Shown here piece after piece: positions 4,861 to 63,991 of a stretch of DNA of 64,000 nt; the first letter of the stretch is position 1, and each line of letters begins with the position of its first letter. The translations under genes were made by a program, and so were the position numbers. The notes beneath the pieces are model-generated. The model made no database searches. It was given only the letters and a program-made list of their open reading frames with translations, and was not told the origin of the DNA. The DNA is taken from the sequence record MW825358.1; one strand, 5' to 3'.

Positions 4861-4910
4861 GGCATAACAGATTAGGCCAGACCGCTTTCGGGCGGTCTGG
4901 CTTTTATGCC
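4861..4910 (+). terminator. Second hairpin terminator, flanked by GGCATAA/TTATGCC
   Basis: Stem gccagaccgct/ggcggtctggc (4876-4901), UUCG loop, then tttt. Confidence 0.75.
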
Positions 4911-5007
4911 GCCTAGTCGGTTCAAAGATAAATCAAACGCATACCATCTAAGAGTACACCCGTCAACGGATGTGCTTTCCTTACCACCCAGAGAACCAGT
5001 AATTTCA

Positions 5008-6213
5008 ATGGGCCATCATACTCAACAACGACCACGCATCTTTCGAACCGAGGTCGTCCCCGTCCAGGCAGGAGGGGAGATCCTCGACCCCCGCTCGGCG
5101 GAGTTGGGGTTTCAGTTCATCAACCATCTGCACCGTCCAGTGACTGTGGTCACACGAACCGGCTTTCGGATCGTGATACCGCACTCTGGTCCTCCTCGTT
5201 TCCAAACGCTTAAGGACAAGCGACGTGTCCCGGGTGATCCGTACTTTATCATCCGTACCCGGCTGACGGCACAGCCTGAGGTAATTCTTGACACAAGCGA
5301 GCTATCCAATGATGCAGGACATCAGTCTACTATTGAGTCTCAGGCCTACCTGAACTCAGTGGTCATCATGGAAAATGCCCGCCGTCTGGGTCCTTCCCAC
5401 ACAGCCTGTGTGGAGTACCGGATTCCAGCGGAGGACTTTGATAGCAACGGAGGAGTCCTGCATCTGCAGAACATTGACCTGCTGGTCAGTATTCTCGATC
5501 AGGCCACCACCCCGCCACACCCCTACTCCTTACTCGGAGTGCGAAATCGAGACGCCGATGAGTTTCAACAGGAGCAGGAAAAAGTTGGGGTCTTTTATGG
5601 CGTTTATATCCGTGATAAGGACGGTGGCTTTGGCCAGCGTTACTTAAACATCAATGGTGAGGTCTTCGGCGTTCCTGTCCGTAACGAACCAAGTGATGAG
5701 CGAGATGGCGTCTATCGCGTGTGTAATGGCAAGGCCAATTCAGGGTACATCCACCGTCGCACGATTGTGGAGTATTACAACTTTGAAGAGGCCGATGAGA
5801 AGCTGGGGTTGTACCAGACCTATCGTGATGCCTTTGCACTAGGGAATCCTCAGGAGAAATCCAAGCGCGATTATGAAGAGCGCAGCCAGCAACTCAAGCT
5901 CGATGAACTTGAGTACCGCAATCAAAAGGCTGCCTCGGAGGCAAGAGTCGATGCAGAGAAAGAACGCATGCGCATGGAGATGCTGCACTTTGAACAGCAG
6001 CAGCGCAAGATTGATCACTTAAACCGAATGATCGGAGCTGAACTTGATCGCCGTGACCAACACCATCGTCGAGAGATGCAGGTGCTGAAGGAGATCTTGG
6101 AGGCGCGCGGACACGAGCGCCGTGAGGCTGGGGAATTGATCAAACTCATTCCCTCTGTGGTCACGACCGTTGCCCTGTACGTGGCAGCGATCAAGAAACT
6201 GAAATCGTTATAA
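5008..6213 (+). CDS. Conserved hypothetical protein with C-terminal coiled coil (phiKZ gp122 position)
   Basis: Long ORF; ATG at 5008 lies downstream of the terminators; charged heptad-like C-terminus. Confidence 0.65.
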   Translation: MGHHTQQRPRIFRTEVVPVQAGGEILDPRSAELGFQFINHLHRPVTVVTRTGFRIVIPHSGPPRFQTLKDKRRVPGDPYFIIRTRLTAQPEVILDTSELSNDAGHQSTIESQAYLNSVVIMENARRLGPSHTACVEYRIPAEDFDSNGGVLHLQNIDLLVSILDQATTPPHPYSLLGVRNRDADEFQQEQEKVGVFYGVYIRDKDGGFGQRYLNINGEVFGVPVRNEPSDERDGVYRVCNGKANSGYIHRRTIVEYYNFEEADEKLGLYQTYRDAFALGNPQEKSKRDYEERSQQLKLDELEYRNQKAASEARVDAEKERMRMEMLHFEQQQRKIDHLNRMIGAELDRRDQHHRREMQVLKEILEARGHERREAGELIKLIPSVVTTVALYVAAIKKLKSL

Positions 6214-6232
6214 CTCCTAAAACGAGGATTCA

Positions 6233-7894
6233 ATGGACAAGTACTTGTTCGATCTGGTTGACCAGCGCATTCCCAAATTCAATCGAAGGATTGTGGAAGG
6301 TCTGGCCACGGAAGAGATGCGCCATGTCGAGGCGTATATTGACCAGATTTGCCGGACCGCTACCGCCGAGCTGGCGCCGGAGCTGATCTACAAAGGACTG
6401 GTGCGTTGCACCCCCAAGGAAGAGTACCAAGAAGTGGTTCGCCGCTTTGGTGCACGCAACACCATCGAACATGCCCGCAGTGACATGTACATGGTCAAGC
6501 TGATGTTTGACCTGCACGGAGAACCCCTCCCGCCCAGGCCCATCTATCTGCCATTCGTCCAACGGGGCGGGCTGATGGAAATGCGCGGCAGTATGTTCGC
6601 CATCTCCCCAGTCATGGCTGATAAGGCAATCTCGGTAGGACAGAACTTCATCTTTATCCCGATGGCTTGGGACCGGATGAACTTCTACCGGGAAACGCAA
6701 TACTTCTACGCCAACGAAGTCCAAGAAGTGGTGCAGGTGGTGTGGTCCAAGACCCATCACTACGATCGCAAGACGCGTCGGACCAATTCGAAACTGGACG
6801 TCAAGGCCAAGACCGTACTGCCCCATCACCTGTTTGCCAAATACGGTCTGACCCGCACCTTTGCGGAGATGGCCAATTCTCAGGTGGTGGTAGGCAGTGC
6901 TGCGGAAATCACCCCGGAACATTACCCGCCCAGCGAATGGGTGATCTGTCATTCCAATGCGGTCAAGCCGCGTGGCGTGCGCAATACTGCGTATGTGGCC
7001 TCGGACATCCGCATGGCGGTGCCCAAGGACAAGTGGACGGTACCCGACGAACGGGAAGGTAATAAAGGCAAGATGCGTCCCAATGAAGCCCTGCGCACGT
7101 TGGTGGCAGGATTCTTCTATATCGTCGATCACTTCCCCGAGCGCGTCACGCCCGATGAAGTCGACGAGCCGCGCCTGTGGCGTGTGCTGATGGGCTATGT
7201 CATCTTCGGACCGGGGCAAAGCGAAGGTAAGTTGGCCGAGCAAGTCTCAGAGCACCTGGGCTCGCTGGACAACTATATCGAAACCCAAACGCGCAAGCGT
7301 CTGGAAGAGGTGGGTGTGTTTGTGGAGGACATCTATCAGCTGTTCATGCATCTGATTGATAACTTCGATGAGCTGATCAAGGACAGCTACACCACCTTGC
7401 CCAGCAGCTACGGCAAGCGCTTGACGTGCCTGCCCTACACGCTGTCGGACCTGACCTGGTCCATCCACCGCTTCATGTTCATGATCGATGCCCAGCGCAA
7501 GCGCAAGGCCCTCACCAAGGACGATGTCAACAAGACCTTCAACAAAACCTTAAAGACCAACACTGTGTTCAAGATGAACAAGCAGCACGGTGAAGTCAAC
7601 CCGATTGCCATTTCGGGTGACAACATGTTCTTTAAGGGCACCTCCCATGTGGTGTTGCAAGAGTCTTCCTCTGCCGGCCGCACCAAGACCCGTACCTCCA
7701 CGGATGATCCATCCAAGGTGCTGGATATCTCGGTGGCCGAAGCAGGCAGCTACAACACGATGTCCAAGGCCGAACCCACCGGTCGGTCCAAGATCAATCC
7801 GTGCACCCCGCTGTCTGCGGACAATGAGATCCAGGAGAACCCACTGCTGATCGAGTTGACCCGCAGAGTCCAGTCCATGATTCAGCGTACTTAA
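6233..7894 (+). CDS. rpoB: Non-virion RNA polymerase beta subunit, N-terminal part (phiKZ gp123-like)
   Basis: 553 aa; IYLPFVQRGGLMEMRGSMFAISPVMAD beta1-like segment and the C-terminal SIAEAG-like/PTGRSKINP beta motifs; position after the capsid gene as in phiKZ. Confidence 0.82.
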   Translation: MDKYLFDLVDQRIPKFNRRIVEGLATEEMRHVEAYIDQICRTATAELAPELIYKGLVRCTPKEEYQEVVRRFGARNTIEHARSDMYMVKLMFDLHGEPLPPRPIYLPFVQRGGLMEMRGSMFAISPVMADKAISVGQNFIFIPMAWDRMNFYRETQYFYANEVQEVVQVVWSKTHHYDRKTRRTNSKLDVKAKTVLPHHLFAKYGLTRTFAEMANSQVVVGSAAEITPEHYPPSEWVICHSNAVKPRGVRNTAYVASDIRMAVPKDKWTVPDEREGNKGKMRPNEALRTLVAGFFYIVDHFPERVTPDEVDEPRLWRVLMGYVIFGPGQSEGKLAEQVSEHLGSLDNYIETQTRKRLEEVGVFVEDIYQLFMHLIDNFDELIKDSYTTLPSSYGKRLTCLPYTLSDLTWSIHRFMFMIDAQRKRKALTKDDVNKTFNKTLKTNTVFKMNKQHGEVNPIAISGDNMFFKGTSHVVLQESSSAGRTKTRTSTDDPSKVLDISVAEAGSYNTMSKAEPTGRSKINPCTPLSADNEIQENPLLIELTRRVQSMIQRT

Positions 7895-7954
7895 AATTCC
7901 TATCACCCGCCTGAAGGTGCCAAAGAGCACCGCCGCCTACGGAGACCTAGAAGA

Positions 7955-10039
7955 ATGTCCCGCAATGATTTGATCAACAACCCACCCACGGTATTCCGTG
8001 TGGATATCGACCCGGAACTGGCTGAGCTGACGCCGCTGTTCACCGGCTATGTCATGGACATGGTCGCCAATATGTCCCAGCGCAATGCCGCGCGCAACAT
8101 GTTCTACGAGCTGGCACAGTCAGACAACTCGATTCTGCCGGAAATGGCGCAGGATCTGGCCACCCTGACTGAATTCTGCGTGTTCACGGAAAACACCCGT
8201 CCCAACCAAATCCATTCACTCCTGCACGAGCTGGTCCAAGTCGTGGTCAACGGCTATTTGGTGATGGCGGTGGAGAAGTTCCCCGAGCAGTTCAACCCCA
8301 CTATCTCCCAGGACATGGTCAATGACCTGGAAGGTTATCTGAGCAAATACCAGCAGGCCATGCAACAGGCCCGCAACTACGTCAGGGGCGGTGGTGGTCG
8401 CCAACCGGTCGGTGGTCGTGGATACGGGAACCAGAGCTTCCAGGGCGGTCGTAGTTATGGCGGTAATGGTGGTCGCACCAGCTACGGCGGTGGTGGCAAT
8501 GCTGGCGGGAGTTGGCAGCCTGGTGGTGGCGGTCGTAGCTATGGTGGTGCCGCCACCGGTCGTCAGGGCAGTCGTTGGGACCAGGTCGATGACCAGGGTA
8601 ACCTGCAAGCTGGCACGCAAGGTGGACACTATAACCCCACGGGCATGCGCTATCGTCCCACCGGGAAGGGAATGTGGGCCGAGGAGCAAAACGGTCGTCA
8701 GCCGGGTGCTGGTGGGGCGCGCTTCCACGGCGGTGGCGGTGTAGGCCGTCAGGCACGAGTGACCGTGGATGCTCCGGAACAGCAAGCTCCGATGGGGCGT
8801 CGTGGACCGGTGGTACCGGACAATGCCACGGTGGTCGACGGGATCACATTCGTGCCGGCTGTCCCAGGTCGTCAGTGGCCCAAGGTGGTCAACCCCGAAC
8901 GTCGTTGGGATCACATCCTGCTCGACAATGGGGTGCAGATGCGTCCTGCTTTCAACTCGCCATGGACGCTGTCCTTCGATCCGGCCACTCCGGCAGTGCC
9001 GTACTACGACCCGGGTACCGAAATTCTGTTCCATGTCAAGGAGCAGGATAAGGTTACCTGGAAACTGTTCACCTGGGATAATTCGATGGAATACCTCAAG
9101 CACGAAATGGATCCGAACCTGCGTCGTCGTGAGCAGGAGCTGCAACAGCGCAAGGAAGGCAAGGTCCGTCCGAACTGGGAACTGGCCAAGGACCTGCGTC
9201 CGACCCCGTCCAGTCCGCTGGCCACCAGCGAACCGCTCAACGCTGAAACCCGGGCCATGGAAGTCAAGTCGGTCAACGATGGCAACTTCATGCAGACCAC
9301 CTCGCTGGCCGATGCAGTCAAGAAGAGCAGCTACAAGCTGCGCGTGGAAACGCCGGAGCTGTTCAAGAAGCCCTTCGAGCTGTACGTGGATCGGGCCGTG
9401 CTCACCACTGAGGTGAACGTGGACTTTGGTCAGATGTATGAAATGACCAATGCCCAGTCCTTCCAGGACCTGTGGTCCAAGATGGGTGACCTGGAAAGCG
9501 AGCTGCTGTCTGCGGTGGATGCGCGTATCACCCAGGGCATCAACCAGGCCCTGAAGCAGAACCTGTCGATCCCGAGTCTGGACATCGACTCGTTCTACGG
9601 TGACTGGGCTGATCTGCGCGATGTGCTGCTGGAGCGGTATGGTGAGCCGGTGGTGGAGGCATTGGAAAGTGCTGCCCCTGAGGTGATCTTCCGCTGGCTC
9701 AGTCATTATGAGGAGTCTGAGATCGAGGAAGTGGCCGCGTTGCTGGATATTGAGGCTGAGCACAAGGCCTTGATCTGGTCTGAGCGCACCTCGGTGACCT
9801 GCCTGCCTTTCTCGGCAGCAGATCTGAACCTGCCGGCAGACGGGGTGATGGTCAGCGCAGCAGTCAATCCGGAAGTGTACAGCACCTTGCTGGCACTGAT
9901 GGCGCGCACGGCCGATTGGCCGCACGTGTACTTTGCTCGCTACCTGACCACCAATGACGGTCAGGTCTTCTCGGTGGTCAAGGGTTACCTCAACGATGAG
10001 GCCTTGATGATCTACAAGACCGACATCGTCTTGAAGTAA
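7955..10039 (+). CDS. Conserved hypothetical protein with an internal Gly/Arg/Tyr-rich low-complexity region
   Basis: 694 aa, strong codon bias; GGRSYGG-type repeats at about aa 140-270. Confidence 0.8.
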   Translation: MSRNDLINNPPTVFRVDIDPELAELTPLFTGYVMDMVANMSQRNAARNMFYELAQSDNSILPEMAQDLATLTEFCVFTENTRPNQIHSLLHELVQVVVNGYLVMAVEKFPEQFNPTISQDMVNDLEGYLSKYQQAMQQARNYVRGGGGRQPVGGRGYGNQSFQGGRSYGGNGGRTSYGGGGNAGGSWQPGGGGRSYGGAATGRQGSRWDQVDDQGNLQAGTQGGHYNPTGMRYRPTGKGMWAEEQNGRQPGAGGARFHGGGGVGRQARVTVDAPEQQAPMGRRGPVVPDNATVVDGITFVPAVPGRQWPKVVNPERRWDHILLDNGVQMRPAFNSPWTLSFDPATPAVPYYDPGTEILFHVKEQDKVTWKLFTWDNSMEYLKHEMDPNLRRREQELQQRKEGKVRPNWELAKDLRPTPSSPLATSEPLNAETRAMEVKSVNDGNFMQTTSLADAVKKSSYKLRVETPELFKKPFELYVDRAVLTTEVNVDFGQMYEMTNAQSFQDLWSKMGDLESELLSAVDARITQGINQALKQNLSIPSLDIDSFYGDWADLRDVLLERYGEPVVEALESAAPEVIFRWLSHYEESEIEEVAALLDIEAEHKALIWSERTSVTCLPFSAADLNLPADGVMVSAAVNPEVYSTLLALMARTADWPHVYFARYLTTNDGQVFSVVKGYLNDEALMIYKTDIVLK

Positions 10040-10042
10040 GCC

Positions 10043-10072
10043 GCATAAAGCCCCCACCCTTCGGGGTGGGGG
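10043..10072 (+). terminator. Hairpin with upstream GCATAA box and no U-tract
   Basis: cccccaccc-ttcg-gggtggggg (10051-10072). Confidence 0.65.
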
Positions 10073-10096
10073 TCTCTGTCAGCCAAAGGATCTTCT

Positions 10097-10465
10097 ATGC
10101 CCCATTTTGATTTGTTCGAAATTCCGCCCGGGTGGAGTACTCTGGCAAGCGCACCCAAGGATGGTCGCGAACTTCTCTTGCTGGTTCCTAGGGGCGGTGA
10201 TCATGCTATCGACACTACCAAGGAACCCTACGTTCAAACCATTGGCCACAACAGCTGTGATCACGATGGTCAGGACGTGTGGCACTACGTAGGTTGGTGT
10301 GCCGATCATGGGCACTATGTCAGTGTCAAAACATGGCTAACCAGCAGCGGCGAGGAGTCTGAACCTGCTGTCAACCATCTTCCCATTGCCTTCAAGCCAC
10401 TCCCACCGATCTTTTCCAAGAACGGTGTTGTACTCATTCAAGATGATGCCGCCCAGGTCGGGTAG
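10097..10465 (+). CDS. Small hypothetical protein with a WxPIxTAPKDG-like (DUF551-type) N-terminal motif
   Basis: WSTLASAPKDGRELLL motif typical of small phage accessory proteins; RBS aaagga. Confidence 0.6.
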   Translation: MPHFDLFEIPPGWSTLASAPKDGRELLLLVPRGGDHAIDTTKEPYVQTIGHNSCDHDGQDVWHYVGWCADHGHYVSVKTWLTSSGEESEPAVNHLPIAFKPLPPIFSKNGVVLIQDDAAQVG

Positions 10466-10542
10466 TTTGCTCATTACTGCACACACGCGTGTGCAGTGCT
10501 GAGTATTCTATACTCAACTGACCAACCTTTGGTGAGGTAGGC

Positions 10543-10633
10543 GGCATAGACGCGCACCTTGCGGTGCGCGCTAGCCTTTGTATAGGGGCCTCCGTATTGG
10601 AGGCCCCTCTTTTTATGCCCTCTTTTTTTTTTT
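10543..10633. terminator. Bidirectional terminator region between convergent genes
   Basis: Hairpins 10551-10570 and 10584-10608, GGCATAG/TTATGCC flanks, and an 11-T run at 10623-10633. Confidence 0.7.
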
Positions 10634-10635
10634 GC

Positions 10636-13539
10636 TTAGAGGACACCACCGCTGTTGTAGGACGGACCGGCATCTGGATCTTCTTGATCCTGCTGCTCCT
10701 CTGCGGCCTCAGCCTCTGACCCTTCCTGCTCGACTTCACCTTCAGAAGCGTCTGCCTCATCGGCAATCGGTTCCGGCATTTCAGGCATCGCTGCGGACAG
10801 ATCATCCATTCCACCGCCAAAGTCATCGGTTCCTGAAGGAGCACCGAAGGTATCACCGCCGCCGAAATCACCACCGGGGTTCTCACCCACCAGCTCGGCC
10901 AACTTGGCCACAGCCGGATCGGTCATCTGACGTTGACGGGCAAAGTTGTACATGACCTTCAACAGGGAATCACCCATGGACTTCATGTGTTCGCTGATGT
11001 TCTTAGCCAGATCCGGCTTGTCATCTTCGTCCACACCCACCAGCATGTCATGCAGCTCTGGCATCACGTTGTTATCGCGCATCCAAGCACGCATCAGATC
11101 AGCCTTGGTGGCTGCCTTGGTCACATCCACCAGCTCAGCCAGTGAACCCAGACCATGTGATTCCAAGAAGGCCGGGTTGATATACGCATCCAATGCCTTC
11201 TCATAGGCCTGGTCTTGCTTGTCATAGGCCTCCATCTGACGATCGATGGTGATCATATCCGGCTTGGGCAGGGAGATCAAAATGCACTGCAAGAACTCCA
11301 TGATGACCGCATCTTGGCCCATGTCTTCCAGCTTTTGCAGTTGCTCTTCAAAAGACTCCATCGTCGGGCGCGTTTGATTAGGCAGTCCAGCCTTGGACAT
11401 GTCCACCTTCTGATTGAAGGCTTTCTTACCCTGCAACGCCTGCTTTTGCTCGGCATTTTGCTCAGACAGTTCCTGGGCACGACCTTGATCGGCAGTGAGC
11501 TTATCCTTGTTCTCATCAATCAAGCGGCGCAGCTCTTCCATCAGGTTACCGTCAGCCAAGATGTACTTGGTGACAAAGTCCTGCAAGAACTCCTCCAAGG
11601 TTGCCTGATAACCCAGCACGCGCTTGGCCAGCAACAGGTTGTTTGCCACCACCGAGGTAGCAAACTCTGCATTGGCGCCTGCATCGACCATATCCGGAGA
11701 CAGGCCCATGGCCATCAGATGGCGATCGCGCAAGTCCTTCATCATTTCCGAATCAGGCTTGACGCGGTTGGAGGCACGCTCTGAGACGTCGAACTTCACT
11801 TCCGGGAACCGGGTGTTGCCTTGAACGGCCACATCGACCGAGGCATTTTGCAAGAAGCTGACAATGTCGGTAGGATTGGTCGCACCGAGTGGGAAAGAAC
11901 CCTGGCGGGTCTTGGCGTACTCGGTCATCAAGAACTCCACCGTGTGGGTGGGGTTGGGATCTTCCGGATCCAGGGTGATGTCAATGCGTGTGCGGTTGAT
12001 CGAGTTCTTGATCGAGGCCATGGTCTCGGCAAACAAAGCCAGGACGCGAATGCCGCCTAAGATCTTGGACTTTTGCAGCAAGGACTGACCAATGCCATAC
12101 TTGTTGTAGTCAAATGCAATGTAGGTCAACATTTCCGCAGGCACATACAACAGCTGGGTATGTTGACGGCCCATCGCACGGGCAAGCATGACGCGGTAGA
12201 CTTCCGTCGGAGAGGTCACCTCCACTTGATCACCGTAAATGCCATTGCGCAGTCGATCGGTCAATTCCTTTTCCAGGAACTGGCCGTAGATGCGTGACAT
12301 CTCATCAATCTCAGATTGACGATCCATGGCCTGACCTTGGAAGGCACGCTTAGCCTGAGTCAACAACTGCGAACCCATCGATGCATTGGCATTGAGAGTA
12401 TTGGACATATCAGCGTAGTAGTCACGCTGGGAGACCGTATTGATCGGATTACCCATGTTATCCAAGAGCACGAAATAACCCAGATGCTTTTCTGGGTTGG
12501 ACGGCTGATGGACGGGAATGACCGATTCAGAAGGCAACTTCATCACCAAAGGGTGACCGATCGTAGGACGGGCCAGAGCGTGGGTAGGCTGTATCAGATG
12601 GATCGGTGCGTGGGTACCCATCGTTGACTGACGATGACCCACACCCATTTGCATCCCAGCCATATAGGCCTCTTGCGACACCTCATAGTCAGCACTTTTC
12701 AAAGCCACTCGACCCCGCTTCCTGAGCAGGTGATAAGTGCGGTCTTTGGCCAGGCGCTGCTGCAGGGCAGACATGCGCAGTACCGAAGGATTGTCGATAA
12801 CGGTGACGTGCGATTCCATGCCCAGCTCGGTGGTGTCCAGCGCAGGCTTATAGCCGGCGGTGTCACCGTAAGCTTCCATGGAGAAATTCAGTTTGGCCGG
12901 ACCTTCAGCCCGCGCGTTTCCTAAAAAGCCCCAAGACTTAGGACGCCCATCAGCTTCGAAATCTTCGCTGATCGACTCCATCGAGACCCGACCTGGATTG
13001 TTGATGGCCTGATCAATGGAGGACTCAGGCAAGATCAACAGCGGATAGGAGCCAGTGAGAAATAAAGCGTCTTCCAAGGAAGGTTTCAGCAACTCGCTAA
13101 TCTTGTAGATCTTCTCAAAGTGCTCCGTGACCACATTGAGCATGGAACCTGCCAATTCGCTGTTAAAGCGGTTGGAATCCAGCGTGAAGTTCACTGCCGT
13201 GGTTACGTGGTCTTTGGGAGCCAGAATTGAGCTAACGAGGATCTGCATCGCCAGTTCTGTCTCAGGCAGAATCTGGAAGATGCTTTGCGCATCATTGACG
13301 TCATTTGCCGTCAGGTCTGAGATGCGCTTGAGCAAGCCCATGTCCGGCGCTTGTAGCGGCTTATCGCGACGACCAGCAGACAGATATCCCTGACCGAAGT
13401 TTTGCTGTTGTACCTCAGGGACCAACTTCCTGGTCAAAGCCGCCACCAAAGGTGCGCGACCGTTGGGTGTAAGGCGACGAAAATCGCTTCGCGCATCCGT
13501 CGGGATCGGGTACGAATAAGCGTTGTTTGAATTGGACAT
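10636..13539 (-). CDS. Putative portal protein (phiKZ gp129-like)
   Basis: 967 aa; QIFQILPETELAMQILVSSILAPKD, YPLLILPESSID and LPSESVIPV..P..HLGYFVLLD motifs as remembered for the phiKZ gp129 family; acidic C-terminal tail; divergent from the gp128-like gene. Confidence 0.68.
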   Translation of the reverse strand: MSNSNNAYSYPIPTDARSDFRRLTPNGRAPLVAALTRKLVPEVQQQNFGQGYLSAGRRDKPLQAPDMGLLKRISDLTANDVNDAQSIFQILPETELAMQILVSSILAPKDHVTTAVNFTLDSNRFNSELAGSMLNVVTEHFEKIYKISELLKPSLEDALFLTGSYPLLILPESSIDQAINNPGRVSMESISEDFEADGRPKSWGFLGNARAEGPAKLNFSMEAYGDTAGYKPALDTTELGMESHVTVIDNPSVLRMSALQQRLAKDRTYHLLRKRGRVALKSADYEVSQEAYMAGMQMGVGHRQSTMGTHAPIHLIQPTHALARPTIGHPLVMKLPSESVIPVHQPSNPEKHLGYFVLLDNMGNPINTVSQRDYYADMSNTLNANASMGSQLLTQAKRAFQGQAMDRQSEIDEMSRIYGQFLEKELTDRLRNGIYGDQVEVTSPTEVYRVMLARAMGRQHTQLLYVPAEMLTYIAFDYNKYGIGQSLLQKSKILGGIRVLALFAETMASIKNSINRTRIDITLDPEDPNPTHTVEFLMTEYAKTRQGSFPLGATNPTDIVSFLQNASVDVAVQGNTRFPEVKFDVSERASNRVKPDSEMMKDLRDRHLMAMGLSPDMVDAGANAEFATSVVANNLLLAKRVLGYQATLEEFLQDFVTKYILADGNLMEELRRLIDENKDKLTADQGRAQELSEQNAEQKQALQGKKAFNQKVDMSKAGLPNQTRPTMESFEEQLQKLEDMGQDAVIMEFLQCILISLPKPDMITIDRQMEAYDKQDQAYEKALDAYINPAFLESHGLGSLAELVDVTKAATKADLMRAWMRDNNVMPELHDMLVGVDEDDKPDLAKNISEHMKSMGDSLLKVMYNFARQRQMTDPAVAKLAELVGENPGGDFGGGDTFGAPSGTDDFGGGMDDLSAAMPEMPEPIADEADASEGEVEQEGSEAEAAEEQQDQEDPDAGPSYNSGGVL

Positions 13540-13585
13540 AGCTAACCTCTGAAGCTAACTTTTTTGTGAAATTGGGAGACGCCCC

Positions 13586-16330
13586 GTGTCAAAGGCGCAA
13601 TACGACATTTATAAGCGGAAGGTCCTCGACTTGGCCCGACGCTTGGTCGTAAAGAGTGGGCCTGTGGCCGATGCGATCAACACTGAGTTGCGCGCACTTG
13701 GACTACAGATCAACGAAAACGATCCAACGTCGTGGAAGTACTATCTACATCTGGCGGGCGAGTACCACAGCACCGACACGGTGATGACGGTCAAGTCCTT
13801 GGACACGCTTGAAACGATCGTGTTCAACAAAGCCAACTTGAACATCCATTTGGCAACGTCTCGTGAGTATCGGGAATTTGGGTCTTACTACCGAGCCTTG
13901 GTGGCTCAGTATCCAGACCAAGAAGACCTGATCCGCGGCATTATCAATCCGGTGGATATCAATACTGCCATTGCAGCAGAAGATGGGCAAATCCTCTACT
14001 ACGATGCTGATCTGGTGGAGGAGAACGAAGAGAACCTGATTGCCAAACTGGAAGTTTGGTGTAAAGTCTTCTCGCGCCGGTGGATGGTCCGGGCCTATGC
14101 GTTCGTGGATGACCTGTACGTAGCCGCACATCGCGGGCTTATGTACCAGCTGATCCCGGCCGTGATCATGAATATCCGGCTAGGCAACTGCCATACTAAT
14201 TACGCGCATTCCTATCACATTCGCGAGTACTTGGCAAGCCATCAAAAGCTGGATGAAGCTGTTGATTACATGACCAAAAAGCAAATGCTCTGGTTGTACC
14301 GGGAAATCCGGTATATCGAGCGTAATGCGGGTAAGCAATCAACCTTCAATTCTCTGCTCAAGCACATCATGACCGATCGGGGCCTGCCCCTATCGCAATG
14401 GGACATGCGCCATAACCTGGCGGCCATGCCCGATGCCATTACCCCGAATGTAGAGTTCGTGCGTAGTGCATTGAATTTGAACCTGACCTCAGGTGGTGCT
14501 GAAACACGCAATGTCACTGAGATGCTGGAGGCTGAGGCGGACTTGACGCTGGGCAACACCCGCGTGATGGACGATGTGGCCCCCATCATTCGGGAGCAAA
14601 TGGAATACAGCTTAAATGACAAGCTGGAGACCAAGGTACTAGAGTCCTCGGTGCTGGACATGACCGATGCGGCCATCTTTACCAAGGCCGATACCCTGCT
14701 GAACCATTGGCTGTTCCTGGCCTTTAAGGATCGCTATACGGCGGTCATCACCGTGGACAACCCGCGCACCGGTGCACCGTTGGTGCTCTCGGCCAAAGAA
14801 GCCTTTATCGTTTACGTCTACGTCTTCGGTAAAGCCTTGGGGTTGAACATTACCCACTTGCCGGTCTTGCCGGCCAACAATGTCCGTCGCTTGAATATTC
14901 CGGCGCGCAGCGTGTTGCAGGGGATGATTGCCAAAGAACATCAAGACCCTGAAGTCTTAGATGCGATCTATGCAGCCATTGAACCGACTGGAACCTATAT
15001 CTCCACAGAAGCCTTTAACCGGGCTGCAGTGAAGATCCACGAGGGGTTGATGCAACACCGCTGGATTTGGGCCACACGGGAAAACCGTGATGAACGTGGT
15101 CAGGTCGAAGCGGCGGCCATGCATTTGTATTTTGATTATCCGTGTGATCTGGGCAACTCCCAGACCTATACGGCCTGGTTTGCCGAGCGCGGGCTGGATA
15201 TGCCGCAGTTCACAGAGTTGGAGGCTGGGTTACTGGCTGACTCTCTGGTCTCCTATGCCACCGGTGCCAATCTCACCGCCAGCATTAGCCTGCGTGATAT
15301 CCAGGCAGCGATGCTGCGGATCATGGCCACGCTTTCGTCCTACAGCATTCAATTCCTGCAATCCATCAACACTCAGCCCATCTTGGTCAATGATTGGCCA
15401 GAGCCGCGCATTGGTAAGATTCATGCCACCGCTGCTGACACGATTGGGGTGAATAACATCAACCTCTATGTGCAGGATGTGCGGGAACGTGGTCGTGGTA
15501 AAGACCACTTGCCTGACATTGGATGGGGTGGAGAGCTGGATGATGCGGCCCATGGCAGGATCTATGATCGGATCGACTTTGACCTGATCTCCAGCCCAAG
15601 CGGTGAGACCACCTTTAGGTATCGCATCGAACTGCCGCGTCCGAACAATGTGGAGTGGAACGTCACAGCACCTGAGTTGGAGGACCTGGAGGATCTGGAT
15701 ACAGATTCCTACAAGCCGATCAACTCCACTGCCTTGGCCCAGGCCTTTGCAACGCTGGAGTCTGACCACTACGCCTTGGATGCTGAGGATCTGCAGACCC
15801 TGACAGAGCGCTGGAACAACCGTCCGGTGGAAGCACCGTATGTGCTGTACGGCGATGGGTTGTACGCCCCGAATCCGTTTGAGGCCAACACCTATGTTCC
15901 GCTGTTTGAGATGCCCATCTATGTCATGGATGCGTTCTTGACCGAGCTGGAATATCCGACTTGGTCCTTCCATTGCGTCCTGGACGATTTGGAATATCCC
16001 AAGCTGGTGGCCACAGCGGTCTTGGATGATCTGGTTTATCCCACCGCCCCGGTGGAGATGACGCTAAACCGTCTGCGTTATTCCGATGTGGAACGTGAGG
16101 CATTCTTAAATGACCTGCAATACCCGTCCTTGACCACGACAGTGATGCTCGATGAGCTGAACTATCCTGAGATCGGACAGGTGGTCCTGGATGACCTGGA
16201 GTACCCGGTCGTTGAACAGACACTGACCTTGAATCGCCTGAACTACACTCCGGTGATCATGTTGGATGATCTGGACTACCCGGATGTGGATTATGCCCTG
16301 GAGTCTGATGGGTTGCCGTATCCGTCCTAA
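13586..16330 (+). CDS. Virion structural protein, probable baseplate component (phiKZ gp128-like), with C-terminal LDDLxYP repeats
   Basis: 914 aa; DPTSWKYYLHLAGEYH, GNCHTNYAHSYHI and NAGKQSTF motifs; about 10 short C-terminal repeats. Confidence 0.7.
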   Translation: MSKAQYDIYKRKVLDLARRLVVKSGPVADAINTELRALGLQINENDPTSWKYYLHLAGEYHSTDTVMTVKSLDTLETIVFNKANLNIHLATSREYREFGSYYRALVAQYPDQEDLIRGIINPVDINTAIAAEDGQILYYDADLVEENEENLIAKLEVWCKVFSRRWMVRAYAFVDDLYVAAHRGLMYQLIPAVIMNIRLGNCHTNYAHSYHIREYLASHQKLDEAVDYMTKKQMLWLYREIRYIERNAGKQSTFNSLLKHIMTDRGLPLSQWDMRHNLAAMPDAITPNVEFVRSALNLNLTSGGAETRNVTEMLEAEADLTLGNTRVMDDVAPIIREQMEYSLNDKLETKVLESSVLDMTDAAIFTKADTLLNHWLFLAFKDRYTAVITVDNPRTGAPLVLSAKEAFIVYVYVFGKALGLNITHLPVLPANNVRRLNIPARSVLQGMIAKEHQDPEVLDAIYAAIEPTGTYISTEAFNRAAVKIHEGLMQHRWIWATRENRDERGQVEAAAMHLYFDYPCDLGNSQTYTAWFAERGLDMPQFTELEAGLLADSLVSYATGANLTASISLRDIQAAMLRIMATLSSYSIQFLQSINTQPILVNDWPEPRIGKIHATAADTIGVNNINLYVQDVRERGRGKDHLPDIGWGGELDDAAHGRIYDRIDFDLISSPSGETTFRYRIELPRPNNVEWNVTAPELEDLEDLDTDSYKPINSTALAQAFATLESDHYALDAEDLQTLTERWNNRPVEAPYVLYGDGLYAPNPFEANTYVPLFEMPIYVMDAFLTELEYPTWSFHCVLDDLEYPKLVATAVLDDLVYPTAPVEMTLNRLRYSDVEREAFLNDLQYPSLTTTVMLDELNYPEIGQVVLDDLEYPVVEQTLTLNRLNYTPVIMLDDLDYPDVDYALESDGLPYPS
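15938..16327 (+). repeat. Peptide repeat L[DN]xLxYP, about 10 copies
   Basis: LTELEYP, LDDLEYP, LDDLVYP, LNRLRYS, LNDLQYP, LDELNYP, LDDLEYP, LNRLNYT, LDDLDYP, SDGLPYP. Confidence 0.85.
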
Positions 16331-16342
16331 CCACCAACCATG

Positions 16343-16373
16343 AGCTGGGAGCCCTTCGGGGCTCCCAGCTTTT
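16343..16373 (+). terminator. Intrinsic terminator
   Basis: 12-bp stem agctgggagccc/gggctcccagct, UUCG loop, U-tract. Confidence 0.8.
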
Positions 16374-16399
16374 CTACAGCCTATTGGAAGGATTGCCAC

Positions 16400-16855
16400 A
16401 TGACTGGCTCACTGGCCTTATTGGCCATCCCGCACAGCGAGGCGGCGAACACCATTATCGCCGATGCTCTCAAAGCAGGCGTTAACCCCGATTACCTCTA
16501 CCCAGGCACCTCCAGCGTCCAGCAAAACGGAAAAGGACTGCTGCCTGTGTATATCGATTCAGATGCCTACAACGATCCGAGTTGGCCCTACCGTGGCAGC
16601 ACACAGCTCACCTATAACCGGGTGGATCTGAACGAAGCCTTGGGGCATTTGAACCTGACCTTGAAAGTCACCCGGACCTTCACAAGCGCGCAGTTGGTAG
16701 CCAAGCTTGCCAGTATCTTGCAGCTGTATTTTGAAGCCGGTGATTACGTGGCAGAAACACGCACGCTCAATACTGCCTCGGCAGTGTACACCCTTAAAGC
16801 TGCAGCCGATAGCCCGCGCTGGGCCGGTCAGTTGCAAATCCACGTACATCTGTAA
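16400..16855 (+). CDS. Virion structural protein of the paralogous YxRLDL family
   Basis: Start moved to ATG 16400 because the longer ORF start lies within the terminator; LTYNRVDLNEAL motif. Confidence 0.7.
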   Translation: MTGSLALLAIPHSEAANTIIADALKAGVNPDYLYPGTSSVQQNGKGLLPVYIDSDAYNDPSWPYRGSTQLTYNRVDLNEALGHLNLTLKVTRTFTSAQLVAKLASILQLYFEAGDYVAETRTLNTASAVYTLKAAADSPRWAGQLQIHVHL

Positions 16856-16858
16856 GGA

Positions 16859-18616: not shown

Positions 18617-18625
18617 GGAATCTCC

Positions 18626-19189: not shown

Positions 19190-19190
19190 G

Positions 19191-19688
19191 ATGGCCGGTA
19201 CGAAGAATCTGTATAACGCCGATCCCCAGGAGGTCTTACTGGAGGCCATCCAGCAAAAGACGGGCGTGGTGTTGCAGATGAACTATCTGACTGCCACGGT
19301 CACTCCCATTAGTGGTACCCAAACCCGGGTTCGCTTTGAACCTAAGTTGGTAAATGGGTACTGCCCGTACGTAGACCCGATCGAACTGGTCATTGACAAG
19401 CTGAATCTGCAAAGTCGCCTGCCCAAGGACATGGTCTATAACGGCACCTGGCCTGCCACCTTTGAAACGCTGGCGCTGTTTATGATCAACAGCTACGGGC
19501 TGTTGGTTTTGCCGGACGAGTGGGAGTTGGTTTCTAATGGAACCACCGTTCCAATGAAAGGCGGTCAAGCAGTCAGTCCCACATTGGGTGGTGATCGGTA
19601 TGTGTCCTTGCGCACTACCACCCAGCACCCCTTGTTTGTTGCAGGGATGACATTTCAGATGTTTGTCACCTCCCCAACGGCGCAGTAA
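19191..19688 (+). CDS. Putative virion structural protein (paralog family)
   Basis: Translationally coupled to the previous gene; LVIDKLNLQSRL motif. Confidence 0.65.
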   Translation: MAGTKNLYNADPQEVLLEAIQQKTGVVLQMNYLTATVTPISGTQTRVRFEPKLVNGYCPYVDPIELVIDKLNLQSRLPKDMVYNGTWPATFETLALFMINSYGLLVLPDEWELVSNGTTVPMKGGQAVSPTLGGDRYVSLRTTTQHPLFVAGMTFQMFVTSPTAQ

Positions 19689-19692
19689 AACC

Positions 19693-19730
19693 CATAACGC
19701 CCCTCCCGTTTTCCGGGAGGGGCTTATGCC
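19693..19730 (+). terminator. Hairpin flanked by CATAA/TTATGCC
   Basis: gcccctcccg-ttttc-cgggaggggc (19699-19723). Confidence 0.7.
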
Positions 19731-24491: not shown

Positions 24492-24526
24492 CATAACGCC
24501 CCCTAGGGAAACCTAGGGGGCTTTCT
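24492..24526 (+). terminator. Terminator with upstream CATAA box
   Basis: gccccctagg-gaaa-cctagggggc, then tttctt. Confidence 0.75.
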
Positions 24527-27500: not shown

Positions 27501-29211
27501 GGCCAACGGTGCACCTTACCTGCTGCAGTCGGGTATGACGCAAGTCTTTATAGGCTCAGGCTCGGGTGGCTGGAATTCACGTGCCTTGCAGCTGAATGAC
27601 TTGCAATTAGATTACCTGCGTGTGGTGCGGGCCGATACCAATGGTTTGGTCACCGCTACTTCTTTTGCAGGTAACGGCTCAGCTCTGACCGGTGTGGTAA
27701 TCAATGACAGTGTCGGTGTGAACGGTCTGGCTTTGAGCTGGACTAATGGACAACCGACATTGCGTGTGGATGCAACTACCATGCGGTTGGCTCTGTATAG
27801 CGATATCGTGGGCGGCGGTTCAAGCTCTACCCCCACCTTTGCAGGGCTGAAACTGGCAGGGGCCTCTGGCACTGACGTCACCACACAGGTCTCAGGTGCG
27901 ATTGCCTCGAGTCAATCCTTAGGCGGTTGGTATGGTGGCGATGCAGCAGGTATCCAAGCGGCTATCAACTTCCGCGCTTCTCAGGCTTGGGGTTCGGGTG
28001 CGAAGGGTACGCAGATCAACTTCCGCGTGACGCCCATTGGGTCTACGGCTCTGACCGATGCTGGTTTTATCAACAGCTACGGTGAATTGCTCATGAACAA
28101 TCGGCTCATGGCCAAGGCCAATACCACTGCGTCGGCGCAGACCACAGGTCAGTACGCAGTGCTTCAGCACAATGGCACCACCGGTCGGTTGTTTGCACAC
28201 GACTACGCCACCTCCACGTATATGCCGATGCTTTACCAGGCCATGGCACACACCTTTGAAGGTGAGGTACGTACGGGCGGGGCCAATAGCTTCCGAATGG
28301 TCAATGGTAACTACGGGATCTTCCAACGTAATGACTCAACCAACTGGTACATGCTCATCACCGCCAGCGGCGATCAGTATGGCGGTTGGAACGGACTGCG
28401 TCCGCTGAACATTAACCTGGCCAATGGTCTGACCAGTGTGGGTAATGGCTTGAGCGTCACAGGCGGATTGGTGAGCAACGGCGATATCAATGCCACAGGT
28501 ATTGTCCGTGGCGCCAGTGGCGGTGTGGGTCGTGCGATTGATATTGGCAACGATTCTTCGTTGTGGGATATCGATGTGGCCAACACGGCCAGTTTGCGTG
28601 GTCAGCAGGACAATACCCAAGGTGCTTTGCAGTTCGGTTCGGGTGGTCCCACCATTGGTCGATCCGGGACGCAAAACCTTGTGTACTCCACCGGTGGCCT
28701 GTGGATTCCCACTTTAGCCATCGGTCAGTACGATACAGACCTGTTGCTGTATGAGACCGGTAACAATAACAACACCTTGGGTGTGCGCACCGGCGATGCT
28801 AATGGTTATCGCTACTTCGCCTTCTCCTCAGATGGTACCTTCTACGCCCAAGAGGTCGCTTTGACCTCGGACCGGAGCCTGAAGAAGAACATCCGTTCTT
28901 TGAAGTCCAACGGTCGCCTGCGCCCGGTACAATACGACTGGCGCGATGGCTCTGGCTTTGACATGGGCTTTATTGCCCAAGACGTGCAAAAGAACTACCC
29001 GCACGCAGTCACAGTCGATGAGCAAACCGGCAAGCTCTCGGTTAAATACCAGAAGTTGCTACCGGTGGTGGCCAAGCAGGTTAATGATGTGGAAGATATT
29101 GTTGTTGCCCAGCAACGCAAGATCAATGAGCTTCAAACCAGCAACAAGCAACTGGCTAAGCGCCTGACACAATTGGAACGTGTCATGAAGAAGTTGCTCA
29201 AGGCAGCATAG
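24547..29211 (+). CDS. Long mosaic tail fibre protein with C-terminal peptidase S74 chaperone
   Basis: ATG at 24547 after RBS aagga; shares N-terminal and shaft repeats with the previous fibre; TSDRSLKKNI...GFIAQDVQKNYP. Confidence 0.9.
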   Translation: MFKYLSLAGLDFTDEVLAGQHVTVRTGPGDDDFVNVLLGDFRTFMTELVQQRIDDLAGEIGDNTGPSIWPALRTMTLVGPIGGTVSFDGSSDFTLFTTVADNALPISKVDGLQGILDSLQQGGVIEAANKLATARTIALSGLVTGSVAFDGSQNVSIATSIADGALTLAKVSGLNSALDAKAPLNAPTFTGLVTTKGPSLDVWAQDASSSAGVIFRNSTGQEQGCLFWDPTTDTMTLRRTADGGVGAAGELVIYNDRMTLNGNNLWHAGNFNPATVGYLSNVATTYESGANANALTAGSKAMMHNSNANTPGTASTYWYIETLMIGASSTNLLQRAYAVVGDDAYTRYCTAGTWGSWRRVWNSSNFTPTSKLDSNANAVSASKLVSARTIALTGLVTATGSFDGSDNLSLATSIADGALSIAKVSGLQTALNNLAAKNGATLTNSTLAGTTTVTGDIIPDVDNVHSLGAPDKMWRDMYIGPGSLYINGQKVLEENDGTIRMTADPGQNIAVQTTGSGDIELAPQGTGLIQLKGPVSFLGGQKIRTSNGSPLLFDEELQFTAGNGIVGGLTIDGSAAWHAGNQLALGTTQSAARTALALVPGTNVQAYSANLTSWAGIDPASKVDVVSLSGQDSRAEQGIGAIRTDQGAPTFYQASAPVITGERRNRFTVTDARTAAITIPVGSSTAVVSLDADAYAPDGSKSVRKIVNTAAGTYRWGNTASGTAGVSYTGSIYVRSADGVSRSGSLNINDSGSNKSITVTGKWQRVFHSGAHASQTNHFLDLILPAGNYHVYGVQFELGELSAYQGVRSTTDYDGSGLPVGTTWFNTADGNKPSRYDGSAFVDVSDIRTSATVPTARGGTGLTSFTANRLFYATDAATMGQLAATANTVVIHNSSGVPTASTTLPSALSIGDIRIGNNNSLSAAGTNLSTATAIAWDYARIMTATAGQGVRLPSPGGGKQVRLYNGSGVAVNVYPTNTSQSIDNLANGAPYLLQSGMTQVFIGSGSGGWNSRALQLNDLQLDYLRVVRADTNGLVTATSFAGNGSALTGVVINDSVGVNGLALSWTNGQPTLRVDATTMRLALYSDIVGGGSSSTPTFAGLKLAGASGTDVTTQVSGAIASSQSLGGWYGGDAAGIQAAINFRASQAWGSGAKGTQINFRVTPIGSTALTDAGFINSYGELLMNNRLMAKANTTASAQTTGQYAVLQHNGTTGRLFAHDYATSTYMPMLYQAMAHTFEGEVRTGGANSFRMVNGNYGIFQRNDSTNWYMLITASGDQYGGWNGLRPLNINLANGLTSVGNGLSVTGGLVSNGDINATGIVRGASGGVGRAIDIGNDSSLWDIDVANTASLRGQQDNTQGALQFGSGGPTIGRSGTQNLVYSTGGLWIPTLAIGQYDTDLLLYETGNNNNTLGVRTGDANGYRYFAFSSDGTFYAQEVALTSDRSLKKNIRSLKSNGRLRPVQYDWRDGSGFDMGFIAQDVQKNYPHAVTVDEQTGKLSVKYQKLLPVVAKQVNDVEDIVVAQQRKINELQTSNKQLAKRLTQLERVMKKLLKAA

Positions 29212-29240
29212 AGGCTGTAGGGGACACGGAGGTCCCCTAC
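29206..29240 (+). terminator. Hairpin with upstream GCATAG box overlapping the stop codon
   Basis: gtaggggac-acggag-gtcccctac (29217-29240). Confidence 0.55.
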
Positions 29241-30866: not shown

Positions 30867-30895
30867 GCTGGAGGTCTTCGGACCTCCAGCTATGC
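30867..30895. terminator. Hairpin followed by TATGC
   Basis: gctggaggtc-ttcg-gacctccagc. Confidence 0.65.
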
Positions 30896-33021: not shown

Positions 33022-33057
33022 CATAAGCCCCCGCCTTGAAAGGCGGGGGTCTATGCC
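33022..33057. terminator. Bidirectional terminator, CATAA/CTATGCC flanked
   Basis: gcccccgcct-tgaa-aggcgggggt between convergent genes. Confidence 0.75.
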
Positions 33058-33691: not shown

Positions 33692-33730
33692 AATAAAAAC
33701 CCGGGAGGCGAACCTCCCGGGATCTATGCC
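33692..33730 (-). terminator. Intrinsic terminator on the minus strand with upstream GGCATAG
   Basis: cccgggagg/cctcccggg stem, UUCG loop on the minus strand, followed by tttttatt. Confidence 0.8.
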
Positions 33731-41966: not shown

Positions 41967-42014
41967 GGCATACAGTCCCTGCTCCCGCAGTGGGAGCAGG
42001 GACTGGTTTTATGC
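41967..42014. terminator. Bidirectional terminator, GGCATA/TTATGC flanked
   Basis: 14-bp stem cagtccctgctccc/gggagcagggactg. Confidence 0.8.
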
Positions 42015-49312: not shown

Positions 49313-49354
49313 GCATAGCGTCCCTCCTGCCCGAAAGCAGGAGGGACTTATGCC
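49313..49354. terminator. Bidirectional terminator, GCATAG/TTATGCC flanked
   Basis: gtccctcctgc-ccgaaa-gcaggagggac. Confidence 0.8.
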
Positions 49355-54707: not shown

Positions 54708-54751
54708 GCATAAGCGCCCCCTACTCTTTGCGAGTAGGGGGCTGTTTATGC
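54708..54751. terminator. Bidirectional terminator, GCATAA/TTATGC flanked
   Basis: gccccctactc-tttgc-gagtagggggc. Confidence 0.8.
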
Positions 54752-58466: not shown

Positions 58467-58510
58467 GCATAAGTCCCTCTCCTGGCTTTTTAGTAAGCTC
58501 AGGAGAGGGA
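58467..58510 (+). terminator. Long hairpin with upstream GCATAA
   Basis: tccctctcctg...caggagaggga with an inner gctt/aagc stem. Confidence 0.6.
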
Positions 58511-58539
58511 TCTTGTGTACTGTCTTTAGGAAAGATGTC

Positions 58540-60562: not shown

Positions 60563-60599
60563 CCATAGACCCCCTCCCGTTTGGGAGGGGGACGTATGG
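60563..60599. terminator. Bidirectional terminator, CCATAG/TATGG flanked
   Basis: ccccctccc-gttt-gggaggggg. Confidence 0.75.
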
Positions 60600-62482: not shown

Positions 62483-63229
62483 ATGTCTGCTAAAGTTCGC
62501 TTTACCACCAAGATCTTCGATCTGGAAGAAGACGGTCAGAGCTTCATTGCCATCTCCTCTCGCGGTAAGACCCGCTTAGGGCGTGCCTTGGCCGCAGGTG
62601 CAGGTTGGCAATTGTTGGTCCCTGGTTATGGTGGCTTCACCAGTCTGGCGGGGTTAATCCGCTTTATGGCTGGGGACCAACGGGGTGTCAATAAGGTCAT
62701 TTGTGGCGCTGACTACGACGATGCTCTAACCGAGTCGGTCAAGTCGGTCTATGAAGAGCTGGTAGTGGGTTATGTCCGTGCGATCTTCTCCTGTCCCCGT
62801 GGGCAGGAGCTGGGCCTGCTGAGGTTGCTGCATGAAAACCCCCTACCCTTTGCCATCGTCTACAACATAGATGATGACTGGGTAGCTAGCAAACCCGCGC
62901 CCTGGTTTGAAGAAGCGCTCAACGAGTTGTATCGCGGTGGCAATGGACAGGCCTCAAGCCCTGCGGGTTTGTCCAATCCACATTTCCTCCAATGGGATCC
63001 CTCTGAAATCGATAACAAGGATCCTGCCTTTATCCGAGCCCTTGAAGGCTTTGATGAACTTGAAAAGCAACACGGCACTGTCGGTGCGTTGGAGCAGGTT
63101 TTGGCTAAACCTGTTTTCAAGGATCTGTCCAAAGAAGAACGTAATGCAATGATTCGGACCTACGTATTGTCCGTCACGGCAGATCCTGCAACCACCCATC
63201 AGTTCATTCCACCCCCGTCTGAGAAGTGA
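62483..63229 (+). CDS. Degenerate NADAR-like (T4 gp30.3-like) paralog
   Basis: N-terminal DGQSFIAISSRGKTRLGRAL...PGYGGFTSL aligns with DGIDHINCYSKAQTALGQQL...PEFGFFASL of the next gene. Confidence 0.55.
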   Translation: MSAKVRFTTKIFDLEEDGQSFIAISSRGKTRLGRALAAGAGWQLLVPGYGGFTSLAGLIRFMAGDQRGVNKVICGADYDDALTESVKSVYEELVVGYVRAIFSCPRGQELGLLRLLHENPLPFAIVYNIDDDWVASKPAPWFEEALNELYRGGNGQASSPAGLSNPHFLQWDPSEIDNKDPAFIRALEGFDELEKQHGTVGALEQVLAKPVFKDLSKEERNAMIRTYVLSVTADPATTHQFIPPPSEK

Positions 63230-63326
63230 TAATGTGAGTACGCACAACTCACGTTATTCTTCAAGGGCGATTTAAAGCGCCGCACTACTTTCCTCACGGC
63301 GCTTTTTCCGCCAAAGTGAATCACAC

Positions 63327-63920
63327 ATGTCCACTGACACCACCCCGCTGTCACCTTCCGATAAACCTGATCCCGCAAAGGACGGCATTGACCACATCAA
63401 CTGCTACTCCAAGGCCCAGACCGCCCTTGGTCAACAGTTGAGTAACTTCAGCCACGTTCCGTTTGATCATCCTGAGTTTGGCTTCTTTGCGTCACTGGAA
63501 GCCTACTGGTATTGGCTCAAGACCGGCATGCAGCACAACTCGCTGCGTCGCCTGTATGGGGCCACGGCCAAATCCGCTGGCATTCGTCAGTTGGAAGTCA
63601 GGATGGATGTCGAAGAATTCCATCGACTGTTCAGTGATGGCATTCGGCTTCGGATTGCCCAGAATCCGAAGTTGCGTGCTGCGGTACGCCAGTCCACCTT
63701 GCCTTTCCGGCATTACTACGTCTACGGCACCAACCCGCCGGTGGTGCGTGACCAAACGCGGATGTATTGGCAAATGGAAGTGATGGAGGAAGTGCGCGCC
63801 ACTCTCAAGCGCGATGAACCCATCAAGCTCTCAGATGGAACACCGGCTGCACGAGCAGCCATCCGTGAGGTGGAAGCCAATCCTTTGCCGGAAGCCTTGC
63901 GCTTTCCGACTGAAGATTAA
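63327..63920 (+). CDS. NADAR-family protein (T4 gp30.3-like)
   Basis: DGIDHINCYSK..T.LG..LSNF.H.PF....G.F.SLEAYWYWL..G...LR.LYG..AK..G and LPF.HYY motifs. Confidence 0.78.
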   Translation: MSTDTTPLSPSDKPDPAKDGIDHINCYSKAQTALGQQLSNFSHVPFDHPEFGFFASLEAYWYWLKTGMQHNSLRRLYGATAKSAGIRQLEVRMDVEEFHRLFSDGIRLRIAQNPKLRAAVRQSTLPFRHYYVYGTNPPVVRDQTRMYWQMEVMEEVRATLKRDEPIKLSDGTPAARAAIREVEANPLPEALRFPTED

Positions 63921-63957
63921 CTCCATCAGCGTCTGCGTTATCCTGTGTAGTGTTAGT

Positions 63958-63991
63958 GCTCTCCGGTCCCAGTGGCCGGAGAGCGTTATGC
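63958..63991. terminator. Hairpin followed by TTATGC
   Basis: gctctccggtc-ccagt-ggccggagagc. Confidence 0.6.

Follow-up and report, generated by a model that had tools for sequence, protein, structure and literature searches.

Hairpins with a conserved TATG tail as probable phiKZ-type transcription terminators in the Xanthomonas jumbo phage LucasX

We studied a family of GC-rich hairpins flanked by the words CATA and TATG in a stretch of 64,000 nucleotides (nt) from sequence record MW825358.1, referred to here as the window. These boxed hairpins are very probably intrinsic (hairpin-dependent) terminators of the phiKZ type, acting in one or both directions. As read from the sequence, the conserved box is a short tail 3' of the hairpin, and the CATA found on the 5' side is its reverse complement. 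The element type is already known from phages phiKZ and 201phi2-1 and is new for the phage examined here. A 10-kb piece of the window matched Xanthomonas phage vB_XciM_LucasX (MW825358.1, 305,651 bp) at 100% identity, and the window is the final 64 kb of that record. The capsid protein of LucasX, encoded at window positions 2502-4769, matched 220 phiKZ-like jumbo phage records, several genes of the split RNA polymerase (RNAP) beta-like kind are annotated in the record, and the gene order DnaB, gp119-like protein, capsid and RNAP subunit is common to LucasX and its phiKZ-like relatives. On these matches LucasX is classed as a phiKZ-like jumbo phage. The paper describing its genome reports 47 Rho-independent terminators predicted by ARNold and does not mention the motif (PMC9009655).

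The LucasX genome was assembled from pieces of the public record together with the window, and genes were called by codon usage, giving 324 genes compared with 334 annotated; within the window these calls matched the annotation nearly exactly. A genome-wide census of perfect GC hairpins, with a minimum stem of 7 bp, returned 166 hairpins, 111 of them intergenic and 55 intragenic. We counted a hairpin as boxed when TATG lay at most 12 nt away on its 3' side or CATA at most 12 nt away on its 5' side, and the expected numbers were derived from the other intergenic DNA of LucasX. TATG was observed 3' of 59 of the 111 intergenic hairpins (3.4 expected) and CATA 5' of 54 (2.3 expected), an association with a binomial P of about 1e-58 that exceeds what composition predicts. 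The reversed orientation of the box was seen once per side among the intergenic hairpins, and only 2 of the 55 intragenic hairpins carried a box at all. The counts are conservative because some hairpins scored as unboxed have a TATG that straddles the end of the stem. Within the window, 16 of 22 intergenic perfect-stem hairpins were boxed, to which an imperfect hairpin at 58467 is added. An earlier note on this DNA had described a family of about 15 such hairpins, and each position that it listed does hold CATA or GCATA, or TATG or TATGC, beside a stable GC hairpin.

About 80 boxed hairpins are dispersed over the LucasX genome. Their stems measured 7-16 bp (mostly 8-12 bp) and their loops 3-9 nt, the majority being 4-6 nt, with TTCG the most frequent loop (15 cases), followed by AAAC (5), GAAA (4) and GTTT (4). 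A C-rich 5' arm was found in 58 of 78 boxed hairpins, following the pattern CCYCCCC...GGGRRGG with a G-rich 3' arm, and the most frequent 5' arms were CCCCTCCC, CCCTCCCC and CCCCACCC. Folds of representative sites had z-scores of -4.7 to -7.6, with no shuffled sequence equally stable. Many of the stems had been said to lack a canonical U-tract, and this was borne out: 41 of the 59 boxed tails had at most four T in their best 8-nt window, short of the five or more U in eight that define such a tract. ARNold features accordingly cover 6 of the roughly 15 loci in the window and miss 9. A scan for sigma-70 promoters and U-tracts over window positions 1-20000 gave counts at the level of shuffled sequence, and curated Rfam families produced no match at gathering score in the 64-kb window.

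Aligned on TATG, the flank of the boxed hairpins gave the position matrix Y-T-T-A-T-G-C-Y-G-T-Y (YTTATGCYGTY). As an outside probe for orientation we scored both sides of each hairpin against the published phiKZ terminator tail, YTTATKYYGT, on a scale of 10. The 3' side, defined by the direction of transcription, averaged 7.44 at one-way junctions, compared with 6.23 for the reverse complement of the 5' side (Wilcoxon P = 6.6e-7), and matches of at least 9/10 numbered 21 on the 3' side and 5 on the 5' side. Both sides of convergent junctions averaged 7.98, and random intergenic windows averaged 5.35. Past TATG, convergent junctions had the highest information content; at one-way junctions it was clear on the 3' side, and the 5' side was nearly flat. 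Perfect matches to YTTATKYYGT occurred 18 times in the genome, all 18 of them intergenic, and 16 of the 18 lay directly after a perfect hairpin. These results reverse the rule proposed in the earlier note, namely that the box stands 5' of the stem at one-way sites: exact core words at one-way junctions were 3'-only at 21, 5'-only at 12 and two-sided at 20. The copies at 4861, 19693 and 30891, which the note had set aside as misfits, and the right-side-only copy at 63985 all fit a tail placed 3' of the hairpin.

The tail consensus and the hairpin arms of LucasX equal the terminator motif published for phiKZ. That motif, stated as a stem-loop with a 5'-TTAT-3' region (BCCYCCCCHWWDGGGRRGGBYTTATKYYGT), was derived from 61 terminators placed by ONT-cappable-seq of RNA 3' ends (Putzeys et al. 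2024, microLife, PMC10914365). As in the motif reported for phiKZ, the LucasX elements consist of a C-rich 5' arm, a short loop and a G-rich 3' arm followed directly by YTTATG-Y-Y-G-T, and they are intergenic, lie where genes end and take a bidirectional form where genes converge. The same architecture was seen directly in KTN4, a genome of the phiKZ species. The LucasX elements differ from those described for phiKZ in lying in DNA of 55% rather than about 38% GC, in their longer stems (mostly 8-12 bp) and in having mostly C after TATG (TATGC); the phiKZ consensus as stated carries no 5' mirror box, unlike the LucasX elements, and the phiKZ terminators come from mapped RNA ends, those of LucasX being predicted from sequence. 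In 201phi2-1, a motif A resembling the phiKZ motif is reported, and the addition of a motif B lengthens the hairpin (PMC11512511), which, as far as that motif is described, fits a 5' complement of the tail. Eight 201phi2-1 terminators were chosen for a terminator-trap assay in the host and several were reported to be functional in vivo, and its authors propose that long stems give resistance to antitermination (PMC11512511). The 201phi2-1 locus that we examined contained CATAA-stem-TATG elements like those of LucasX. The suggestion that the LucasX box is a termination signal of the phage's own transcription system, with similar elements in relatives of phiKZ, thus appears essentially right, given the match to the mapped phiKZ motif (PMC10914365) and the published 201phi2-1 motif (PMC11512511).

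The boxed hairpins are distributed over gene junctions as terminators are, at gene ends and rarely between divergent genes. They were present at 21 of 25 convergent junctions (84%; 17 two-sided), 46 of 252 plus-plus junctions (18 two-sided), 6 of 21 minus-minus junctions (2 two-sided) and only 1 of 25 divergent junctions (4%; none two-sided). All six convergent junctions of the window that had been described as two-sided are so. Both boxes are present at nearly all convergent junctions because the terminator would act in both directions there, and the element resembles an interrupted palindrome because GCATA(A) is the tail read on the opposite strand.

Selection for a long conserved helix was considered as the reason for two boxes and rejected. 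Across the 35 two-sided loci, 73 Watson-Crick pairs formed at the five positions outside CATA/TATG, compared with 77.3 +/- 5.3 when flanks were shuffled, and the left and right spacers from stem to box were uncorrelated in length. With no covariation and uncorrelated spacers, the two boxes are therefore best described as two independent, strand-specific tails around one hairpin; the lack of covariation beyond the core also sets LucasX apart from the long-stem proposal for 201phi2-1, since it speaks against a longer helix being under selection. The tandem hairpins at the convergent junction 10545..10617 (both strands; stems 10551-10570 and 10584-10608) agree with this: read on either strand, a 5'-boxed hairpin comes first and is followed by a second hairpin and UAUGCC (TATGCC in the DNA), with a run of 11 T beyond it on the plus strand. 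Canonical Rho-independent terminators consist of a GC hairpin and a U-tract, and an A-tract upstream of the hairpin often lets them work in both directions. The LucasX elements share with them a stable GC hairpin, a position at gene ends, a weak rU:dA start of the hybrid and, in the upstream complement of the tail, a counterpart of the A-tract that would allow two-way function; they differ in that the tail is a specific word, UUAUGCYGU, and not a run of U. The 5' copy is weaker where the flanking genes are co-directional; its most likely roles there are to stop antisense transcripts, to extend the base of the stem, or both.

The same census was applied to relatives, covering about 42 kb around the capsid gene in nine phages and, for RTH11, the 40.5 kb surrounding the part that matches the window. 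Hairpins with CATA/TATG boxes in the right orientation were observed in Xanthomonas RTH11, Pseudomonas KTN4, 201phi2-1 and PA1C, Ralstonia FLC1-1B, Burkholderia FLC6 and Erwinia RAY; wrongly oriented cases numbered at most one, and the genomes that carry the boxed hairpins range from 38% to 58% GC. A phiKZ-type terminator follows the capsid gene in KTN4, 201phi2-1, PA1C, FLC6, RAY and LucasX. The TATG tail is not used by every phiKZ-like phage. In the stretches sampled, Erwinia pEa_SNUABM_54 had few CATA/TATG hairpins, and the hairpin tails of Salmonella SPFM4 were TTATTT or U-rich, with U-runs and the G missing. Goslar had just two GC hairpins in 42 kb; its stop signals must therefore look different. 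The survival of the phiKZ word in a Xanthomonas phage of 55% GC and in Ralstonia, Burkholderia and Erwinia relatives argues that the tail is read specifically and not as a mere U-rich stretch.

That termination occurs at these hairpins in LucasX, and how it would proceed, we infer largely by analogy. On the RNA, a GC-rich stem, C-rich in its 5' arm and G-rich in its 3' arm and often capped by a UUCG tetraloop, would be followed by the short tail Y-UUAUG-C-Y-G-U in place of a long U-tract. As in bacterial intrinsic termination, the hairpin would form behind the polymerase, and r(UUAU) would provide the weak upstream part of the hybrid that the completed hairpin disrupts. Since the tail beyond UUAU is not U-rich, release would not depend on an extended, slippery run of U; the remainder of the tail may instead serve as a sequence-specific element common to many phiKZ-like phages regardless of their GC content. 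The retention of its A and G across very different base compositions suggests specific recognition. One tentative extension, which we hold to be rather improbable, is that the UAUG of the tail is read by the part of the non-virion RNAP that recognises the late-promoter core TATG, so that the elongating enzyme would pause or be captured as the hairpin forms. This would amount to a terminator code specific to the phage polymerase and valid from 38% to 58% GC, and in a variant of it the mirrored copy would fire or block antisense transcription.

Several points weigh against reading the boxed hairpins as intrinsic terminators. The sequencing runs listed for LucasX comprised one DNA run and no RNA run, and its terminators are predicted from sequence. 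The conservation of A and G inside the tail goes beyond what the weakness of the hybrid explains. In a pure 3'-tail model the 5'-only box at 12 co-directional hairpins is superfluous. Folds of the sense strand were more stable than those of the antisense strand by -0.73 kcal/mol on average (P = 0.049), which weakly supports a function as RNA, and the effect is small.

The alternative that survives best, though we consider it unlikely, is that the element is a terminator-promoter module, in which the TATG after the hairpin is a start site of the non-virion RNAP for the next gene and the 5' CATA an antisense start. The core of the phiKZ late promoter is exactly TATG, with +1 at the G, and each of its positions is required in vitro (Yakunina et al. 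2015, PMC4666361); the lineage uses the same kind of non-virion RNAP, the tails at plus-plus junctions lie 3-600 nt upstream of the next gene, and the TATG of the tail is conserved in phages from 38% to 58% GC. However, the word alone is insufficient for initiation in phiKZ (PMC4666361). The box also reaches its highest frequency and its best conservation at convergent junctions, from which a promoter would send antisense RNA into the adjoining gene, and divergent junctions, the expected place for promoters, are boxed in only 1 of 25 cases. Eighty hairpin-free intergenic TATGs upstream of LucasX genes are without the C-Y-G-T conservation, and the placement of the tail after hairpins and at convergent junctions, together with its conserved downstream C-Y-G-T, is that of a terminator and not of a late promoter. 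Reinitiation at TATG, as had been suggested earlier, is accordingly disfavoured as the main role. Restart, antisense starts and recognition by the elongating phage polymerase are candidates for a secondary role of the TATG in the tail.

No extended late-promoter consensus was found around the hairpin-free intergenic TATGs of LucasX, and TATGTAG, as in the phiKZ P119L promoter, occurred 7 times in the genome, 3 of them intergenic. A second TATG, in the form TATGTAGA, was seen about 13-14 nt downstream of several tails (window ~40-50 on the minus strand, genome position 241693; and genome positions 109317 and 28963). The same word is found at the P119L late promoter of phiKZ and KTN4 (CTATGTAGAC, at about 18880 of the sampled stretch), and the second TATG may indicate late promoters situated immediately behind terminators. 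Words enriched upstream of genes were mainly T-rich words and pieces of the terminators. TTTTTAC, ATTTTTA, ACCTATA and ATACTA were 8- to 13-fold enriched upstream of LucasX genes and may be parts of an AT-rich consensus for early promoters, as known from phiKZ.

Less probable still is that the function lies in the GCAUA that precedes the hairpin on the transcript, which would serve as an orientation-specific tag for a phage RNAP or another factor, or as a processing or export tag of a nucleus-forming phage; no observation made here favours a processing or export tag. Exact CATA on the 5' side only is indeed present at the plus-strand window sites 10043, 24492, 29206 and 58467, the 12 one-way junctions noted above are 5'-only genome-wide, and the 5' side reached at least 8/10 at 19 of 82 one-way junctions, compared with 3.5% of random intergenic windows. 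Against this, conservation at one-way junctions is significantly better on the 3' side and 3'-only sites outnumber 5'-only sites (21 vs 12), and the phiKZ motif from mapped 3' ends, as published, is a hairpin with a 3' tail (PMC10914365). At the four plus-strand sites that had been taken to define a 5' rule, the 5' CATA was confirmed and the 3' tails proved degenerate or T-rich. Some 5'-only sites retain near-cognate 3' tails, e.g. TTGTG at 58467 and TTTTTATTCG at 33724; the latter, a minus-strand site listed earlier as one-way with a 5' box, does have that box and also has a TTAT-type tail, UUUUUAUUCG, on the transcribed strand.

The weakest alternative, a DNA-level element such as an interrupted palindrome that binds a dimeric protein or extrudes into a cruciform to serve replication, recombination or packaging, or a mobile repeat resembling repetitive extragenic palindromes (REP) or miniature inverted-repeat transposable elements (MITE), is suggested by the inverted-repeat symmetry and the roughly 80 dispersed copies but is very improbable, as the highly variable distance between half-sites (stems 7-16 bp, loops 3-9 nt) is unsuited to a dimer on duplex DNA, stems differ among copies that share their flanks alone (the commonest 8-mer is in 7 of 78), so that the family was not spread by copying, placement tracks gene orientation (84% of convergent vs 4% of divergent junctions), and many copies are one-sided.

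With about 80 boxed hairpins compared with 47 ARNold predictions, reading these elements as terminators approximately doubles the usable terminator map of LucasX. Such a map sets operon boundaries in a phage that is considered for biocontrol of citrus canker.

Among the convergent junctions of the window, that at 33022..33055 combines CATAAG, a CCCCCGCCT stem and TCTATGCCGT in a bidirectional element scoring 9/10 on each strand, and at 54709..54750, CATAAGC, an 11-bp stem and TGTTTATGCTGCTG score 10/10 and 9/10 on the two strands. The junction at 41969..42013 has a 14-bp stem with GGCATA on its 5' side and GTTTTATGCTGCC on its 3' side, giving a tail on both strands. Those at 49314..49352 (CATAGC, 11-bp stem, TTATGCCGGT) and 60564..60598 (CATAGA, CCCCCTCCC stem, ACGTATGGTC) are likewise assigned to both strands.

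At the co-directional junction 19693..19728 (plus strand), an annotated terminator, CATAAC precedes a GCCCCTCCCG stem whose tail, CTTATGCCGT, matches the phiKZ tail at 10/10. Two plus-strand hairpins have the 3' box only: a co-directional junction at 30867..30894, with a 10-bp stem and a UUCG loop followed directly by TATGCTGTC, and a hairpin at the end of the deposited record (63958..63990), with a 9-bp stem followed by GTTATGCTGCC. At the co-directional junction 10044..10072 (plus strand), GCATAAAG is on the 5' side only and the 3' tail, TCTCTGTCAG, is degenerate. The hairpin at 24492..24521 (plus strand), also an annotated terminator, consists of CATAAC, a 10-bp stem with a GAAA loop and a T-rich tail, TTTCTTGCGT, scoring 8/10; that at 29207..29240 (plus strand) has GCATAG 6 nt 5' of a 9-bp stem and a tail, CCTTCCTAATTC, without TATG. 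The imperfect long hairpin at 58467..58525 (plus strand) reads GCATAAG, TCCCTCTCCTG...CAGGAGAGGGA, TCTTGTGTACTGTC, and in its tail TTGTG replaces TTATG, with G-U pairing to the 5' box. Two elements lie between minus-strand genes: one at 59..96, with GGCATAA, an 11-bp stem and GGTTTATGACGG, is boxed on both sides, and in the other, at 33700..33728, the transcribed minus strand carries GGCATAGAT, a stem and the 8/10 tail described above.

Two tandem hairpins follow the major capsid gene on the plus strand. The first (4826..4849) has a UUCG loop and the tail TGGTTTTGCG without a box; the second (4863..4908), annotated by ARNold, has GGCATAA 10 nt 5' of its stem and the tail CTTTTATGCCGCC, which matches the phiKZ tail at 9/10. 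In both tandem double hairpins, at 4826-4908 and 10545-10617, the box is on the outer flank of the pair. The genes around the first pair (window 92-7894) encode a DnaB-like helicase on the minus strand, a small virion protein, the major capsid protein and, about two genes on, an RNAP beta-like subunit. This order, from DnaB to RNAP, is kept from LucasX to phiKZ, 201phi2-1, PA1C and the Ralstonia and Burkholderia phages, with the terminator that follows the capsid gene present in most.

Some product names in the record also drew our attention. LUCX_333 (window 62483-63229), a protein of 248 amino acids, is named 'assimilatory nitrate reductase large subunit', LUCX_35 (genome 41244-42464) is named 'aldehyde dehydrogenase' and LUCX_90 (genome 90226-90690) 'permease of the DMT superfamily'; all three names look like automatic mis-transfers.

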